Assembly: GCA_020536535.1 (NCBI GenBank)
Contig: JAHLWZ010000666.1
Coordinates: forward strand, 1-64,000
Length of the DNA stretch: 64,000 nucleotides
Direction: 5' to 3'
From: Pelomyxa schiedti
Taxonomy: Eukaryota; Protista; Evosea
A program made the position numbers and the translations under genes. Each line of letters opens with the position of its first letter. Position 1 is the first letter of the stretch. The notes under the pieces were generated by a model. That model was not told where the DNA came from. It saw nothing but the letters and a program-made list of their open reading frames with translations, and did no database searches. Positions 13,301-22,417 of this stretch are shown piece by piece.

Positions 13301-16300
13301 CATTGGCCTTGATGACTTGGGGATCCCAAGGAGTGGCTTCAAATTTCCAGCTGCAATTTGTGAGAAGGAAAGGGGATTGCCTCTGTATACCTTCCAAGGG
13401 AAACTTTCTCTGGTTTAATTTTTTTCGCCTAATTTGTTTAGTCGAGAATGGAGTAAATCTGTAGGAAACCACCTTCACGTCAGCAAGGAAGTCATAAATG
13501 CTGGCAGTGTCTTTCAGAACGGTCCTTTGAACAATGAGAATTTGGTTTATGAGGAAATATGCGTACCGGAAATACTGCTGTGTGCCTGTCCATGTGACAT
13601 TATAGAAAGTGGTTAGAAGTCGGTGTGGGAAACTCAGTAATACCCTGTGGAGGCCTAAAGGTGCCTTCATCAAATAATTCATGTGCCCCACAAAAGAAAA
13701 ACTGGGGAAAAAATGTAAAGTGGTGTGAAAGGGTGAGAAAATCTGGAACCTGTCTGTAGGGAGCTAAATTTTTTCGACATACACTGCTCACTCGACTTAG
13801 GTTGGTAGTGGTTGGTAAAGCATCTTCAGCTGAGAGATCTCTTGGAGGTGCTTTGAGGTAGGGGTCTCTTAGCTCTTCCAAATCGCCTTGTAAAACTTTA
13901 TCTACTCTCAAGAGAAGCCAAAAATTGTCCTTTTCTTTTTTCAAAAAATTTAAGTGGGCTGTTGCATTTAACCTTTGTATTTGGAATGCTAAAAATCCCT
14001 TGTGCGAATTGGAGAATTGGGTCTGGCTCTTCCTGAAGAGCATTTAGATAAGAATTTGTCGCACAACACAAACTGGATTTGATGCATTCAAGATGTTGCG
14101 AACATGTGGACTGTTGAAGTCAAAATAAAAGTTCTCAGAGACTTTGGTCCTTGTCGTGAGATTATACAATGCCAAGCAGCCAAAAAGAGGTTCCAGCAAG
14201 TCATAACAAAATTTGATGTACTTCACACTTACAAGAACTTGTGTCCTGGAGTATGTAATTCATTACTATGATATAATAGTTGGTGCACTTGTCTAATTTT
14301 GGTTTGTAGTACTTCTTTCACATACTGCAAGAGATGTGTTTCCTTTGCTTTCAGATGACGGTATTCCCGCTCCAAAGATCTCCATGTCATGTCGTAGTTG
14401 TAAAGAGAGGTTAAGTGAGTGTGCTCCACCATCTGCCTTGAGAATTACAATTAACTATTGGAATATTACTCGAGTACCCTATCTTTTGCTAAAGAGGTGG
14501 ACTCCTCATCCTGCAGAAGCCAATCTTTATGAATCAGATCAGGTGTGGTGTTGGCTTGAATGGAGTTAATGTCATAGGTATGATTGAGTGACATTACGAT
14601 TTTCTTGCAGTGGAGTTACAGATTCATATTCATCAGTTTCGGTCCCTCTCTCACTTTGGATATGGCGAAATTGGGTGAAGTTGTGCCGCACCACTTTGTG
14701 TGGAGCATAGTAATATTCCAAGAAGTATTGCAATGGTGGTGAGTATGTGTCAGTATCGATGGAAATGTCCTCATATTTATTGGATTGTGTTTCAACAATG
14801 ACATCATCACTGGGAAACTGACACAAGGGGTCCCGAAGAGCCTCATCAGATTGGAATCTGGCCTCATAATAATCTGTATTACTTGTTGATGGTTCTGGAG
14901 CCTAGATATAAGTAAACGACAATAGTAAGTTGAAAATAACAACATAAACCAATTGTGCACCTCCCATAAGAAGGCTGGTCAAATCAAAGAAAAGCTGAAA
15001 CCCAGCACCAGCACCAGATGACTCTTGAGATTCGGGTTTTTCTGTTGCAGGTTTTGTATCTGAATTTGAGTCTGCTGCAGCTGCAGTGTCAGTTGCAGAA
15101 TCCAGTGGAGATGGAGATGACACTGATTCTTCGTTGACGAGCTTAGTTGAAGTACGTTCTCTTGGAGAAACTTTCATTGCGGTAGAAGTTTCCTACTCAA
15201 GTAAGAAGCATGCAGGAATGTAGAAATATATACCCTCCCAGAAGACTCTTCCATAGAACTGGCTTCCATTGGCTTTTTGGAATTAAGATACAATCCGTCA
15301 CTGTTTGGAAGCATACCATTTTCTCAGACGTGACAAGGGACTTAAAATTAGAGAATTCTGTGAAATTGACATACCCCTGGGTGCTCCTGCCAACTTGATC
15401 CACAAGTACCTTTTGGAAGACTGTATTAGATCAACATGAAAGAGAAAGAGGGAAAAAAGTTGAAGTAAAAACCTGGATGTGAGAAGTTGACATCTTCTTA
15501 TGAAACTCATGTTTACACAACTGTTTAAGCTCGTTCACAGACAAGCTCCCTCTCCCAGTTGTATCATACTTTTTGAAGCAGCGCAGTTCATCATCATGAA
15601 CTGAGCCACTTCGCGCTCTGGAGTGTCTGGTAGGTTCTGTGGAACTGTTCTGCTGAAGGTACAATTGTCGTGGAGTGGTCACAGGAGTTCCTTCATGTTG
15701 TGGAGTAATTGCTCTCGGTGGTGGAGTTGTTGATGGAGCTACAAAGGTGGAAAATGATGCATGCAAAGAAGATGAAGAAGAAGTAGAGGAAGCCGATAAT
15801 GAGCTTCCTCGCCTTCTGGCAGCAGAGAGATGGGAAGATTCCGACCCTCCGCCCTCCAAGCTGCCCTCAGTGTTGTTCTTAGAGGGATGCCCATCAGAGG
15901 TGCCTTCCTTCGGTGTTTCACCATCCTCCCTGTTCTTGCCCCTGCCTTCTTGCTCATCATCACTCCCCCGCGAGTGTTTGCGCTTCTCTTTGTGCTTCTC
16001 ACCGTGGTCACTACTACCACCACCAGCAGCAGACCTGTCCTGGTGCCTGTCCTCGTCCCTGTCATTGTCATTCCGCCTGTACTTGTCAGAGCCTCGGTCG
16101 TGCTCGCCCCCCCTGTGCCTCGCGCTTTCGATATGATGATGGCCCTCCTCCTCGTCCTCGCCCCCGTGCTTACTCGCGGGCTTGTGCCTCCCCCCGTCTC
16201 TGTCCCTATCTCGTTCCCGCTCCCTCTCCTTCTCCTTCTCCTTCTCCTTCTCCCTTTCTCGCTCTCGTTCTCTTTCTCTTTCGCGCTCCCTGTCCCTGTC

Positions 16301-16747
16301 CCTGTCCCCCCTGTCCCGCTCTCTGTCCCCCCTGTCCCTGTCCCGCTTGGCCGACCCTCGCTCGTCGTCGCTGCCCACCGTGCTGCCGTGCTTCTTCCTG
16401 CGGCCGGCGTCCTTCCTCTCCTCCCCGTGCTCGCTGCCCCTGCGGCGGTGGCCCCCTCCTCCTCCTCCGCCCCTCGCGGGGCGCTCCCCGCTGCCTCCTC
16501 CTCCTCCTCCTCCCCCGCCGTCCTCGCTCGCGACCTCGCTGACCGTCGCTGCCGCGCTCTTGGACGCCTCGCTGGCCGCGTCGTCCACCGCCGACGAGGA
16601 CGTGGTGCACGACGCCTGCGTCGCGGTCGCCGACTCGCGGGGCGCGGGCGACGCCGAGTCCGCGCTGTACGTGGTGGGCGAGATCTCGCGTCTCGTTCTC
16701 TCCCTGTTGCGATTGGTTCCTCCAAGCAGGTTAAGCACTTTGGACAT
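4314..16747 (-). CDS. DOCK-C/D (zizimin-type) Rho-family GEF with DHR-1 and DHR-2
   Basis: DOCK motifs appear in order: DPLCQFPSDDV, EPLFGCLALY..KVSENFYFDFN, NIYLYPENV, WFVFDIISKSL, LALFLRDLLSVFHRG, DYEHFIALCLP, PPLHISWLRKLAVEH, AELYE, YKEKP, IPFTEFGKSQ, KIILQTEHAFPWVLTRQ, TPIENIIE, LQSLLSGSVLP. Both ends are low-complexity. Confidence 0.92.
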
Positions 16748-16959
16748 GTCTACACCTTTGGGCGAGGTCTTTTTTTTTTTTTTGTTAAATCGTCTGGATT
16801 ATTTCTCGTAAAAGAGATTTGGTTTTTCCGTTGTCACTATTGGACGAAAAATAAAAAAGAGAGCTTCTTGTTAGTCTGTGGGTGTGTCCAACAGGTACTT
16901 GAGTGAGTCTTGGTCTGGTTTTTTTCTTTGTTTGCATGTGATGCTGGAGTTAATCCAGA

Positions 16960-17859
16960 CTAAAATGAGAGCCTAGAGCGTTTTGTTGTGTCCTTAGAAA
17001 TTCCAAACCTTGCTGCTCTCTTCCTCTGCCTCTCGGCTTCTGATTCAGCAGGGGCATTTTTGACTGTTACAACTTTTGTGTGTGTTGATTGAGTGCTTGT
17101 GGAAGTTGTTGTGGTTGAAGTCGTGGGGGTTGTTGGTTCTGCCGTGGAACTAGTCCCAAAGCGCTCCAGCCGCTTTTTTCTACGATCGGTAGAATTCTCT
17201 GGACAGAACCGAACGGAGCGTGACAGTTTTCGGTCTTCAGTAAGAAGCTCATCTAAAGAAATGTTTGATTTGTTGTGTCAATTACACGTAATTGTCATAT
17301 AACGGGGATATTCCATACCAACTGTAGGGACGCCAGAAGGTGATTCTGTTACTGGGATAGTCGTTGTGTGTATAAATGACTTTTCTGCTAACAAGCTTGT
17401 AGCTACGGGTGCAGGACCAGGGGTACTTTTTTTGAACTTTCTTTTTCTAGCCTGTTATATGACAGGTGTTGGTTTTTTTTTTTTTTCGGTTGTTAAAATA
17501 ATTTTGCCAATATACATATGAAAATTGTAATCATTATTATGGGTCACTGATTTTTTGCGAGAATGAAACGAGGGCAAATGATACCTCAAGTCGTGCTAAG
17601 TCGTTAGCAGGTTCTTGAAGTACTAGAGAAGTTGTTTTTTTTTCGGGAATGCCAAACCTAACAGCGCGGGCAGCAGCACTTCCCTTGGAGGTTCCTGTTG
17701 TTGTGGTTGTGCGAGGTTACTCTGGGAGAAAGGGAATTGTGGGATGGGAAGGAGGGAACGTGTTGTGTTTTGGAGTACGTAAAAAGCGACGCCAGCACAT
17801 TAACTTATGGGATTACCCTTGAGTGCAATCACGTGGCGCTTGGAGTCATCGGTCGACAT
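16960..17859 (-). CDS. Small Tho1/SARNP/MOS11-like protein with repeated R-x-x-R-F motifs
   Basis: Four-exon model (ATG 17859, TAG 16960) contains ARAVRFG, ARKRKFK, KRLERFG and KRAARFG separated by T/S-rich linkers; no SAP domain seen. Confidence 0.6.
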
Positions 17860-18245
17860 CTAACGACTGCCCTCGAGTTTTCTTTCTTTTCGCGGATGTG
17901 ATTAGACCTGGAACTTCAGCTACTGTCTTTCTTCCAGAAACCTGGATGAGAGGATACAGCGAACACGAGAATATGACATAGCCCTATCAAGCACTCGTTT
18001 GTAGTTTTTGTTGTCCATTACCTAGTTTCCTGGAATGATGATAATAATTTTCCGCCTCTTCCCGCCGAAATCGCCCTTGTTTTGCTGGTGAAATCACATT
18101 TTCCGGACAGTAATGACCGAAGTGGATCAGATGGCACAAACAAAAGAAACTCGCTGAAGTGAGGAGATCCCTTTTACATTCAATTAAATGCGACAAAGGC
18201 ATTCGTTCAGAACTAACGTGCGGCAGACACAGCGGCATTATTATT
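17860..18245. promoter_or_regulatory. Putative bidirectional promoter (SARNP-like / MEDS-cyclase)
   Basis: ~390-bp gap between divergent start codons. Confidence 0.5.
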
Positions 18246-20450
18246 ATGAACTCTACAAACGGATCTTGCTCGGTCGGCGGTTCACACACGTTGGTTCTGT
18301 ACTACACCGCATGTGATATGTTGAAGTACATTGGGGATTTTCTGGCCGTAGGGATTAGAAACAAGGAGTTTTGTGCTTGTCTCTACGAAGGTTTTAATGT
18401 GCTTTTTTTTTTTTTTTTTTTCTAAGTGCAGTAGACCCAATCGAGGAATCGGCAATCGCTAAAGCTGTAGAGAGTGCTGGGTTGAATGAGGGAATGTGGT
18501 CAGAGGCTATCGAAGCTGGTAATGTGGTTTGCTTAAAGCTGCCAGCTGCAGTATATCGCGAGACAGGCATCCTAACAGTACTTTTCGCTCTCGGAAGTGT
18601 ATAGTACTCACCGCGTAATAGAAAGTATCTGCTCTCTTCAGGTTGTGCAGGGATGCTCCACAGTCCGAGTCGGGGCTGAGGGTGTGCCGAGTTGTGGGAG
18701 CCCTGAGTTACCCTTTTGAGCCACGCCATACGGAAAGAATATCAACATATGAGACAGTCAGTGAAATTTGGCTGAGAGTGATGCCCGTACACGCCTTATG
18801 CTGCTATCCAGTTACTGGAGTAGGCATGTGCTCAGAACAACCGAACGCAATTGACACCATTTATTGGCAGATATCAAGCAAATTCTGAAAATTGCTGAGG
18901 CACACCCCCGAGTAGTTATCTGTGAGTCTGGCATGGTCCACACCATCAAGGACGAGAAGATGTTCTCTAGTATTGGAGTGAAGGCCCTGATTGCAAGCTC
19001 CACTGCCCCTGTATCTTTGGATCAGCTGGGCGTTAGTTCGATTGAGCAACTTGAAGGAGGTTCAGTGAATTCAAATTCATGCCCTCTTTACGGTATGCAG
19101 AACTCCGACCACCTTTTCCTGAAGAGCAGCATGATTTACTCAGCAATGCAGCGTTGTTGACAATCCTCAGTTCTCTGTGTGATGGTGCAATGGTTTTCTG
19201 GGTGGTCCCTGATGACAATGGCATTGTTTCAAGAGTTGTTTATGCACCAGTCGGTGATTCCCAAGCGGGTTCAATCTCAATGCAACTAGTTGGGAAGAGG
19301 TTGTCTACCCTGCTGGTGGAGGCATCTTCAGGATACCTCAACGGACTTCCATGCATATTTCGTGACGTGGTGTGGAGCCCGAATAGTCCAGCAGGGCTTC
19401 TGTTTTTACTCTACTCCACACCTTCACCTACACTCCATCATTCCCTCCTCGACGCTATCATCCTCTCCCTCACATGTGGAAACTTTTATTCAAGGTTTCA
19501 GGTAGGTCTTTGTTTTGGAATCCGCAATCTCACTCATTGAAGGTTGCGATGTTTGGCCTGCTATTAGATATCTTCCCTGTGCACGTGGTGAAGTTACTAC
19601 TTAATTCACATGTGGGTCCAACAAGACATGTAATTACTGAGAACTATAATTCAGTGGCAGTGTGCTTTATAGATATTTGCAAGTAAGTGCAGGAACTCGG
19701 ACTGGCGAAAAGACTTATACCTACAGATTTTCAGAATTCTCGAGGACGTGTAGTTCTGGGGATGTAGTAAACATTCTAAATTCTCTTTTCTCTTCCTGGG
19801 ATTTGTTGTGTAATAAGAATGGATGTTGGAAATTGAAGACGATGGGAGACTGCTATGTAAGTACCCTCACATACCCTCAATAAATGTTCAGTTTTCGTTA
19901 GATTGTAGCCAGTGGATTACCTGCCAAAGTCGACCACCCTACTGCAAGCATAACTCGCTTTGCTTTCAGTGCTATGGAGTCTTGCAAGAGCATGTGGAAA
20001 TGTGTCAGAGACTTCCCTATTCAAGTACTTCCCTCTCAGGTTTATTCACAAATAACATCTCAAGGTTAAGGTTGGTATACACTTTGGGCCTGTTGTGGCA
20101 GGAATTATAGGTTCAATGAGAACCTCCTACGATATATGGGGTGCGTAATATTTTAATTTTTACTATGTACACCAACGAAATACTCAGGAGAGACCGTGAA
20201 CGTGGCACAGAGGGTGCAAGAATCCAGCACCCCAGACCGTGTAACAATAACAGAAGCGGCTCTCTCGGATCTGTGCAGTTCCTTTCCTGAGTCTGAAGAT
20301 ACTGGACCGGTTCGGCCAACATCTCCAGACGGAGTCAGTGCTGCCCGACCTTGTTGTGGCACCAAAGGTGACTACCGGTGGGAATCAAGAGGCACCCTCA
20401 ACCTCAAAGGCCAAGCCCCAGTGGACTGTTTCTTTCTAGAAAAAACCTGA
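18246..20450 (+). CDS. Soluble class III adenylate cyclase with N-terminal MEDS-like sensor domain and a possible PAS-like middle domain
   Basis: Cyclase motifs: LLLDIFPVHVVKLL, VCFIDIC, KLKTMGDCY, VASGLP, VKVGIHFGPVVAGIIG, SYDIWGETVNVAQR, RGTLNLKG. N-terminus: HTLVLY..FLAVGIRNKEFC, AIEAGNVVCL..VYRETG, CRVVGALSY..ISTYE, ALCCY, AEAHPRVV. Confidence 0.88.
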
Positions 20451-20531
20451 GCAACCCACTTCAAGAAATATAATAGGTGTTGTTTGTTTTGCTGGGATAT
20501 ATTTCTTTTTGTAGAGCGTTGCCTGTAGTAT

Positions 20532-22417
20532 CTAAAGGAGGCCAGAGGTTGGGGGGTACTGTAGGTATGCAACCTGCAACAGGTTGAGTGTAAAAAGGAT
20601 GAGTGACACACAATACCTGCTGCTGCCCCAATTGAGGGTATAGATTGCCTTGAGTAGCATTTGGATAAACCACAGTGGGTGTCCCCTGTGGTAACTGCTG
20701 TTGTTGCTGCTGTTGCTGCTGCTGTTGCTGTTGCTCTTGCTGTTGCTGCCGTAGCTGTTGTTGTTGCATTAGAATTTGTTTCTGTTGTTCTTCTTGCCTT
20801 TGAGCTAAAAGTTGCTGTTGTTGTTGAAGTATCTGTTGTTGTTGTAGAAGGAGTTGCTGTTGTTGTTGCTCTTGTGACTGGTGGAGTTGGAGCTGTGCGT
20901 TTTTCTCTTGGGAGGGGAAAATATCATCCAAAAGAAGAAGGGGTTGTGAAGGAGCTGCTTGGGTTGCGGTGCCTTGATTTTGTTGTAATTGCTGGGATTG
21001 GCTTGGTGGTGGTTGAGCCTGTGGCTGGGGCTGTGGCTGAATTTGAGGTTGAGTTTGAGTTTGGGTTTGAAGTTGAGGTTGTGGTTGGTTAACAGATTGG
21101 ACTGCAGAGGGTTGGAGAACTTGTGTGGAAGATGACAGAGTTGATGGGAAGGTCATTTGGGATGATAACGCTGCTGATGAGGATGTCTGCTGCTGGGAGG
21201 GCGGCATCGAATTAGGTGGGGGTGGAGGATTAACAACCTCCACAACCGGGACAATTGGGAAGCTGCCAGTTTGGACTGGGCTCTGCGTTGTGGTTGAATA
21301 GTAGTAGGATGAGGAGAGTTGGAGCCCGCTGGTGGGAGTTGATGATGCTGTCATTGGTATGGCTCGTCTTTTGGCTTCATCTATGCATGCCGCCAGGTGA
21401 TTGTCGAGAAATGACACAGGGAATACCTTGCAGCACATCGGGCAGTGGCCAACAGCAACAGAACTTGTGCTGTCAGTGTTAGGGGTTGTAGCTGGAGAAG
21501 CTGTAGGTCCAGTTACAGTAATGGGTGTACCCCCAATGTTATAATATTGTGCAACAGGTTGAGCACCACCCCAAACAGATTGAGCATTATGTTCAACACC
21601 ACCAAATACACTGCCGCTCATCATAACTGATGCCGCTAAATTCGGCTGGCTGGGCGGGGTTCCATAGGGATTTACCATTGGGCGTGGCGTTGATGCCGGT
21701 GTAGACACAGGTTGTTGTGAGATAGTGAAGGAAAGGCAAATATAGCCTGGGTATTTGCGTTGGTCAGTTGTCAGAGAGCAGTTGTATGGAGGAAGTAGCT
21801 TGAACCAGGCGTCCTTGAGCTGAGGTAGTTGCCCAGTATTCGAGGTTGCAGAGCATGCAGCAAAGAGAAGTGGAATAGGTATTTCTAGCCGCCCAATTAT
21901 TTCCTTTGTCCACCAGTGTGAGCCGAAAACAAACACCTGTTAATTGTTTGGACAAAAAGCCAATGAAAAGGAAGATATATATTATAATAGAGAAGTAATA
22001 GATGGTTTGCTTTCTAACCTGCAGGCAGTCATTAATCGGAGACAGAGATAGTGGGACAGAGAGTTTCTGATTGTACTTGGGGTTGACAGTATCCTTGACT
22101 ACTCTAGTGCCAGACATTCTCTGTCCATTGAGATAAGCAACAACATATGTATCTGATGTAGTGCCTCCAATATTGGTACCCTTTAGGTCTCTGGCCTCTA
22201 CAACTAAATACAATAGGGAAAAAAAACAAAGTTTACAAGGCGGAAAAAAAAAAGTCGTTTGAAGGGTCGCGCGCTGCAAGTAGCACGGAAAGGAAAAAAA
22301 AAACAACGAACTGTGAATTAAACAGGACGTTCGGTTACCGTGGACAGCAATGACTTGTGGGTTTGTCACTTTGGCAGGCACACCGGGAAGTGTTACAGAT
22401 GGCAAAAACGAACTCAT
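20532..22417 (-). CDS. C2-domain protein with UBZ4-like zinc finger and Gln-rich tail
   Basis: VVEARDLKGTNIGGTTSDTYVVAYL..TRVVKDTVNPKYNQ and IIGRLEIPI (C2); CPMCCKVFPVSFLDNHLAAC (C2HC finger); polyQ tracts. Confidence 0.75.

Follow-up and report, generated by a model that had tools for sequence, protein, structure and literature searches.

A gene at 18246..20450 (+) of the window, as we call the 64,000 nucleotides analyzed from the anaerobic amoeba Pelomyxa schiedti (positions 1 to 64,000 of the 104,339-bp contig JAHLWZ010000666.1, assembly GCA_020536535.1; window and contig coordinates are the same), joins an N-terminal MEDS domain to a C-terminal class III cyclase domain. MEDS has been described as a prokaryotic sensor domain (PMC6944256, PMC5847659, PMC11784639). 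We consider it probable that the locus is one native nuclear P. schiedti gene for a soluble, probably homodimeric, MEDS-linked class IIIa adenylate cyclase of 603 amino acids. Both domains lie in one spliced reading frame, and the catalytic residues of the cyclase and the signature residues of MEDS are intact.

A single spliced reading frame joins the two domains

Read without splicing, 18246-20450 (+) breaks up into short open frames scattered over the three phases. Enumerating splice sites junction by junction gave 10 exons separated by 9 introns of 40–47 nt (eight GT-AG, one GC-AG), with one open frame of 603 codons running from the start codon at 18246-18248 to the stop codon at 20448-20450. 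A previous reading of the bare sequence (the sequence-only reading) had placed an intron-bearing eukaryotic gene at these coordinates, and they proved exact, with an ATG and a stop at the two ends. From residue 25 on, the spliced product is identical to the 579-residue protein KAH3759718.1 (P0001), a singleton cluster that GenBank names "response regulator [Pelomyxa schiedti]". The name is unsupported, because a Pfam scan of P0001 with E values up to 1 found no REC domain (PF00072). We applied Pfam and fold tools to P0001 and to exon pieces rather than to the full 603-residue product.

The deposited model begins at the second in-frame ATG (18318..18320, +) and lacks the 24 N-terminal residues, which carry the His-x-x-x-x-Tyr motif of MEDS (His14/Tyr19). 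Exon 1 alone (18246..18390, +; aa 1–49), which holds both the upstream start codon and this motif, matches positions 2–35 of the Pfam MEDS hidden Markov model (HMM) with 14.1 bits (E 0.042), and the 24-residue extension raises the score on a local MEDS HMM, built from 17 MEDS domains of archaeal and bacterial plasmids, by 7.7 bits. For these two reasons we took 18246 as the start. On these profile scores, KAH3759718.1 starts 24 codons late and loses the conserved MEDS His motif.

The MEDS-coding span (aa ~12–182; 18279..18926, +) is split by introns 1–3; its limits come from the local HMM (residues 12–182) and from Pfam (residues 5–152 of P0001). Intron 1 (18391..18434, +; 44 nt, GT-AG) contains an unbroken T20 tract and ends in tandem CAG/TAG acceptors at 18431/18434; the two choices are indistinguishable and differ by one Val, and the deposited model uses 18434. 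Exon 2 (18435..18577, +; aa 49–96) is entirely MEDS. With intron 2 at 18578-18621 (+), as in the deposited model, the segment that is kept lines up with a helix that canonical MEDS domains have. Exon 3 (18622..18823, +; aa 97–164) carries G114, R119, G122, Y139-E140, and C156-x-Y158, and it is supported by Pfam MEDS HMM positions 95–145 (E 0.031) and by a six-frame match of the local HMM (17.8 bits). Intron 3 (18824..18870, +; 47 nt), also used by the deposited model, is the GC-AG intron, and it keeps the 16-residue spacing from C-x-Y to H-P found in bona fide MEDS proteins. Exon 4 (18871..19059, +; aa 164–227) takes in both the H175-P176 end of MEDS and the first part of the middle module. 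A GT-AG alternative for intron 3 (18820-18878) scored 35.7 bits on the MEDS HMM, against 50.2 bits for the GC-AG model. Taken together, the alternatives for introns 2 and 3 scored 28–36 bits against the same 50.2 bits for the deposited model, which keeps the family spacing.

Could an adjacent MEDS gene and cyclase gene have been wrongly joined? The deposited model is automatic and starts the gene at the wrong ATG, which lends this some initial appeal. The gaps between coding blocks, however, are just 40–47 nt long, with proper intron boundaries and compatible phases, and they offer no space for a terminator or promoter. One exon (exon 4) spans the boundary between MEDS and the middle module, no independent ATG-initiated frame precedes the cyclase, and the exon 5/6 junction (aa 360/361) comes where a series of predicted helices ends. 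A two-gene chimera is therefore very unlikely.

The published P. schiedti genome has 7.43 introns per gene, with GC-AG introns making up 1.59% of the total (PMC8887013), and the intron number and lone GC-AG intron of this gene agree with those statistics. Its neighbors are ordinary eukaryotic genes, encoding a 3076-residue protein, a polyQ protein, and a RhoGEF. From the neighbors and the intron statistics together, we conclude that the gene is native and nuclear and not symbiont contamination.

The C-terminal domain has a complete class IIIa catalytic center

The cyclase domain (residues ~385–603) is encoded by exons 6–10, all on the + strand. Exon 6 (19543..19682; aa 361–407) carries the helical connector (LLLDIFPxxVxxLL), the first cyclase strand, and the metal-binding Asp404. 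Exon 7 (19727..19856; aa 407–450) carries Lys444 and Asp448 and matches positions 19–61 of the Pfam Guanylate_cyc HMM (2.2e-8). Exon 8 (19902..20024; aa 451–491) is followed by exon 9 (20065..20140; aa 492–517), which has Asp514 in YDIWG and matches HMM positions 102–126 (1e-6). Exon 10 (20188..20450; aa 517–603 and stop) has Asn521 and Arg525; it is supported by a Guanylate_cyc match of 1.1e-3 and by AlphaFold2 (AF2), which places a loop of ~25 residues with low confidence before the terminal strands. The whole deposited protein scores 145.2 bits on Guanylate_cyc (PF00211; E 2.1e-42), where the cut-off is 21.9.

Among sequence matches to solved structures, enzymes of the Rv1625c/Cya type were the best single-domain hits (108–112 bits), followed by the halves of mammalian membrane adenylate cyclases (75–81 bits each), whereas class IIIb enzymes scored ~38 bits. 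We assign the domain to class IIIa because the first two groups score far above the third. In an AF2 model built from an alignment of 56 cyclase domains, the predicted local distance difference test (pLDDT) values over P0001 residues 340–579 are mostly >90, and a fold search matched the cyclase model to the C1 domain of adenylate cyclase AC5 (1cs4_A) with Z 27.1 and a root-mean-square deviation of 2.0 over 186 residues, and to full-length Rv1625c with Z 22.6, where the 211 matched residues extend into the helical lead-in. The nearest relatives of the cyclase part in a length-limited search of 5.8 billion proteins were bacterial class IIIa enzymes at 33–37% identity.

All six catalytic residues are present in one chain: the metal-binding D404 (in FIDI) and D448, the substrate-binding K444 (with D448 in KTMGD) and D514 (in YDIWG), and the transition-state residues N521 and R525 (in NVAQR). 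This is the residue set that the sequence-only reading had listed, with both metal Asp residues, the Lys/Asp pair, and N-x-x-x-R. Their spacings of 44, 7, and 4 residues are presumably those of Rv1625c. Because the full set lies in a single chain, the straightforward prediction is that the C-terminal domain should be an active homodimeric adenylate cyclase.

A Lys/Asp pair specifies adenine, and guanylate cyclases have Glu/Cys or Glu/Gly at the same positions. Production of cGMP or another cyclic nucleotide in place of cAMP is a reading to which we give very little weight: class IIIa also holds guanylate cyclases, solved guanylate cyclases match the model at Z 24–25, and sequence alone cannot prove specificity, but Lys444/Asp514 is the adenine-specifying pair and the alignment shows the same YDIWG-x-TVNVA motif in the Pelomyxa cyclase and in the C2 domain of AC5.

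The N-terminal domain is a divergent MEDS domain

P0001, although 24 residues short, matches positions 17–161 of the 161-position Pfam MEDS HMM (PF14417; 29.4 bits, E 8.2e-7). The local HMM gives 50.2 bits over residues 12–182 of the spliced product, where 200 shuffled sequences gave at most 4 bits. When exons 1 and 3 were scanned singly, MEDS was the sole Pfam match in each, and the two matches are colinear. By these profile comparisons, the N-terminal domain belongs to MEDS, with a match far beyond chance. A weak NCBIfam match to RsbA, a MEDS-type anti-sigma factor, was also found, and a search of P0001 residues 1–165 against 7.3 Gb of plasmids with tblastn returned only two real matches, both to haloarchaeal "MEDS domain-containing proteins" (92–96% query coverage, 25–28% identity) whose own Pfam MEDS scores are 129 and 151 bits.

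The residues that mark the family are retained. Ten of the 14 most conserved MEDS columns are identical in Pelomyxa (H14, G77, Y89, G93, G114, Y139, E140, C156, Y158, and H175), and three more carry conservative changes; the signature residues H14, Y19, Y139-E140, C156-x-Y158, and H175-P176 align with conserved columns. The motifs occur in order as GSHTLVLYY (12–20), VYRETG (88–93), CRVVGALSY (ending at 126), STYE (137–140), HALCCY (153–158), and AHPRVV (174–179). The sequence-only reading had made the MEDS call from motifs of this kind; every motif that it quoted is present in the 603-residue product, and the call itself holds on the profile scores and the retained signature.

The domain is distant from all others that we compared. 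It is 14–24% identical to any of the 17 plasmid references, and in a tree of these references, a set without methanogens, the Pelomyxa branch is 3.5–3.6 changes/site long and has no supported partner. The closest detectable relative is on a plasmid of Haladaptatus pallidirubidus (locus L002, 2300-4756), in an 818-residue MEDS-GAF-BAT-HTH_10 protein. A six-frame scan of the whole window revealed no second MEDS or cyclase gene.

The middle module may be GAF-like

Between the two domains lies a module of ~180 residues (~183–360), most of which is encoded by exon 5 (19101..19501, +; aa 227–360). It has no match in Pfam or NCBIfam, and when exon 5 was compared with 1.84 billion representative proteins, the only matches were itself and two spurious repeat proteins. 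Two AF2 runs agree on its outline (a helix, two strands, two helices, two strands, and a helix, followed by the helical connector); its pLDDT is 50–77 when modeled as part of the whole protein and averages 49 for the module by itself. Fold matches to it do not rise above noise (all Z ≤5.4); of the 50 listed, about half have a GAF-type fold, comprising IclR effector domains, CyaB2 (1ykd), and the GAF domains of kinases, phytochromes, and cyanobacteriochromes. We suggest that the module is possibly GAF-like, with a candidate GAF span of ~230–345. The sequence-only reading had called this linker weakly PAS-like; that was neither borne out nor contradicted, and the low-Z matches lean weakly toward GAF. 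As a separate observation, the Haladaptatus protein, a bacterio-opsin-activator-like regulator, has MEDS followed by GAF, the order suspected here.

Two hydrophobic stretches, with 19-residue Kyte–Doolittle (KD19) values of ~1.9, lie at residues 244 and 361. Both map to helices predicted within soluble domains, and both include charged or Pro residues. The protein is thus probably cytosolic on the best reading of the models; the previous statement that it has no transmembrane helix is probably right, if less certain given these two stretches.

Weighing regulation by the MEDS domain

In the mechanism that we propose, two identical chains would form two active sites that make cAMP. The input would be the N-terminal MEDS, a member of a family classed as inactivated KaiC-like α/β domains, with the signature His14, Tyr139-Glu140, Cys156-x-Tyr158, and His175-Pro176. 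A change of state in this part could pass through the possibly GAF-like module and the helical connector to the catalytic dimer. The candidate signals are a small molecule, a partner protein, and, through the His, Cys, and Glu residues, a metal or redox state. Biochemical demonstration of a MEDS ligand was not found in the literature that we searched.

An alternative keeps this gene and this enzyme but makes MEDS an oligomerization or partner-binding module instead of a small-molecule sensor, placing the cyclase under protein or assembly control. MEDS has been classified as 'iKaiC', an inactivated KaiC-like ATPase domain that occurs as both input and output in archaeal two-component proteins (Galperin et al. 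2018, PMC5847659), and in line with this, Pfam finds a weak KaiC match in a haloarchaeal protein that is bona fide MEDS; this classification and match make the alternative a serious rival to small-molecule sensing. It gains further from the use of MEDS as the N-terminal domain of RsbA-type anti-sigma factors (PMC11507031) and from the change of the reference GE motif to GA in Pelomyxa. Against it, DcmR and EtnR2 are tied by genetics and gene context to responses to dichloromethane and epoxyethane, and Pelomyxa retains every one of the His, Glu, Cys, and His residues of the signature, a set suggestive of a ligand or metal site. We regard control by partners or assembly as a real but less likely possibility.

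Several observations weigh against a MEDS-regulated cyclase as we propose it. The Pfam MEDS score of P0001 is just below the curated cut-off of 29.8 bits, without the N-terminal share contributed by exon 1. The GE-x-x-W motif present in most of the 17 references reads G122-A123-L-S-Y126 in Pelomyxa; its Glu varies among the references (Asp, His, Asn, Ile, or Ser), and its Trp is kept in at least 14 of the 17. AF2 gives pLDDT <50 for residues 1–200, which were modeled without alignment depth; a sequence comparison with solved structures gave no match for the MEDS part; and the segment upstream of the connector departs from the charged consensus of aligned class III cyclases. No orthologue or paralogue of the MEDS or linker part turned up in the protein, genome, and metagenome searches, and KAH3759718.1 was found on one genomic contig only, with no transcript-derived copy. 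Finally, given the great length of its branch, the MEDS domain may have lost its sensing function or altered it.

Some of these points would also fit a lineage-specific accident, neutral or decaying, in which MEDS and linker are fast-evolving remnants and the cyclase is constitutive or the protein is not made at all. The singleton cluster, the linker without a homologue among 1.84 billion representatives, the long MEDS branch, and the missing transcript-derived copy all speak for this. However, the frame stays open across 10 exons (603 codons) whose splice sites are usable, and the protein retains the full set of six catalytic residues and almost every MEDS signature residue, which would be unexpected without selection. 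We consider such an accident unlikely, and a MEDS-regulated cyclase remains our preferred reading.

Comparison with known cyclases and MEDS proteins

Each half of the protein has well-described counterparts. Mycobacterial class IIIa adenylate cyclases of the Rv1625c/Cya type (4p2m, 5o5k, 7yzi) share the six catalytic residues and the homodimeric logic, but Rv1625c has an N-terminal six-helix membrane anchor where the Pelomyxa protein, the product of a spliced eukaryotic gene, has a soluble MEDS and an orphan α/β module. The C1 and C2 domains of mammalian AC5, AC8, and AC9 have the same class IIIa catalytic fold; the mammalian membrane enzymes, however, are pseudo-heterodimers of half-degenerate domains within a G-protein-regulated chain of 12 transmembrane segments, whereas Pelomyxa has one complete domain per chain, implying a homodimer.

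On the input side, DcmR, EtnR2, RsbA-type anti-sigma factors, the Methanosarcina acetivorans kinase MA2082, and haloarchaeal MEDS-GAF-BAT-HTH proteins all place MEDS at the N terminus, upstream of an output. These regulators are prokaryotic, and their known output modules are of the HTH, histidine kinase, anti-sigma kinase-like, or REC kind, or are lacking; the Pelomyxa output is a cyclase. The overall plan of a cytosolic N-terminal sensor, a helical connector, and a cyclase dimer is shared with the cyanobacterial CyaB1/CyaB2 (GAF-GAF-PAS-cyclase), bPAC, and engineered phytochrome-cyclases, which use other sensor families and are mostly class IIIb. In the fold search, residues 214–579 of the Pelomyxa model align loosely with the phytochrome-cyclase 6fht_B. 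Dictyostelium ACG, a cyclase with a CHASE domain, provides an amoebozoan precedent for a class III cyclase with a bacterial-type sensor; its sensor domain and topology differ from those of the Pelomyxa protein.

Class III cyclases are built in modules, and in protists they are known with many different sensor domains. To our knowledge, MEDS is not among the inputs of known cyclase architectures. The sequence is already public, and precomputed tables list PF14417 with PF00211 for KAH3759718.1. MEDS occurs in none of the 60 other significant matches to the full protein; conversely, none of the plasmid MEDS matches carries a cyclase annotation, and the two haloarchaeal MEDS proteins scanned with Pfam contain no cyclase. 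A MEDS-cyclase is not described in the literature that we searched, where MEDS itself is rarely mentioned and its only joint mention with adenylate cyclase is a list of domain abbreviations; this accords with the sequence-only reading, which knew of no such description in a eukaryote. The main P. schiedti papers do not mention cyclases (PMC8887013, PMC10579272). The combination of MEDS and cyclase is new among the proteins and literature searched, and prokaryotic MEDS-cyclases may exist. A soluble MEDS-cyclase could also be a practical reporter, with cAMP as the read-out, in the search for stimuli of MEDS domains.

Origin of the MEDS domain and a possible link to the endosymbiont

Because MEDS is described as prokaryotic, lateral acquisition is the economical reading, and we consider it plausible that the domain came from a prokaryote. 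The sequence-only reading had proposed such a transfer; the prokaryotic distribution of MEDS fits it, and the MEDS tree gave neither an archaeal nor a bacterial donor, which cannot be named because the Pelomyxa branch is so long. Word-indexed protein searches with residues 1–160 and 1–165 found no relative of the MEDS part. Scans of GTDB species genomes, which see near-identical peptides only, returned just the haloarchaeal locus already in the query alignment, and scans of JGI metagenomes, with the same reach, returned no close relative. These two sets of scans disfavor a recent transfer from any sequenced organism, and the three introns inside the MEDS-coding part suggest a long residence in the host genome.

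P. schiedti depends on a methanogenic endosymbiont: blocking methanogenesis by the cytosolic Methanoregula kills the host (PMC10579272). The sequence-only reading had named such endosymbionts for Pelomyxa, and one is documented in this species. That dependence makes a host-side sensor attractive, and a prokaryotic-type sensor in the host is a reasonable, though unproven, candidate for host–symbiont signaling. One could speculate that the MEDS domain came from a methanogenic or syntrophic prokaryote and reads a metabolite tied to the obligate methanogen symbiont, perhaps a C1 compound, a coenzyme-M-related thiol or sulfonate, or a redox or metal state, with cAMP tuning the host to the state of the consortium. 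For the sensing of C1 compounds or symbiont metabolites the evidence is the name of the domain, and we regard this full scenario as a long shot. If true, it would make the protein the first eukaryotic MEDS sensor and a host-side signaling device for methanogen endosymbiosis.

Neighboring genes

A convergent gene downstream (20461-21936, −) encodes a very Gln-rich protein, annotated at 541 residues, with long polyQ and Q/L/P runs. It contains a C-x2-C...H-x3-C motif resembling a UBZ-type zinc finger and has no Pfam match. Upstream, a divergent gene (15431-16747, −) encodes long Arg/Asp/Glu dipeptide repeats (RD, RE, and KE runs) and Gly runs, and the C-terminal part of its product appears EF-hand-like by eye. 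The region of this upstream gene shows a strong AT skew, −0.30 over 16001-18000.

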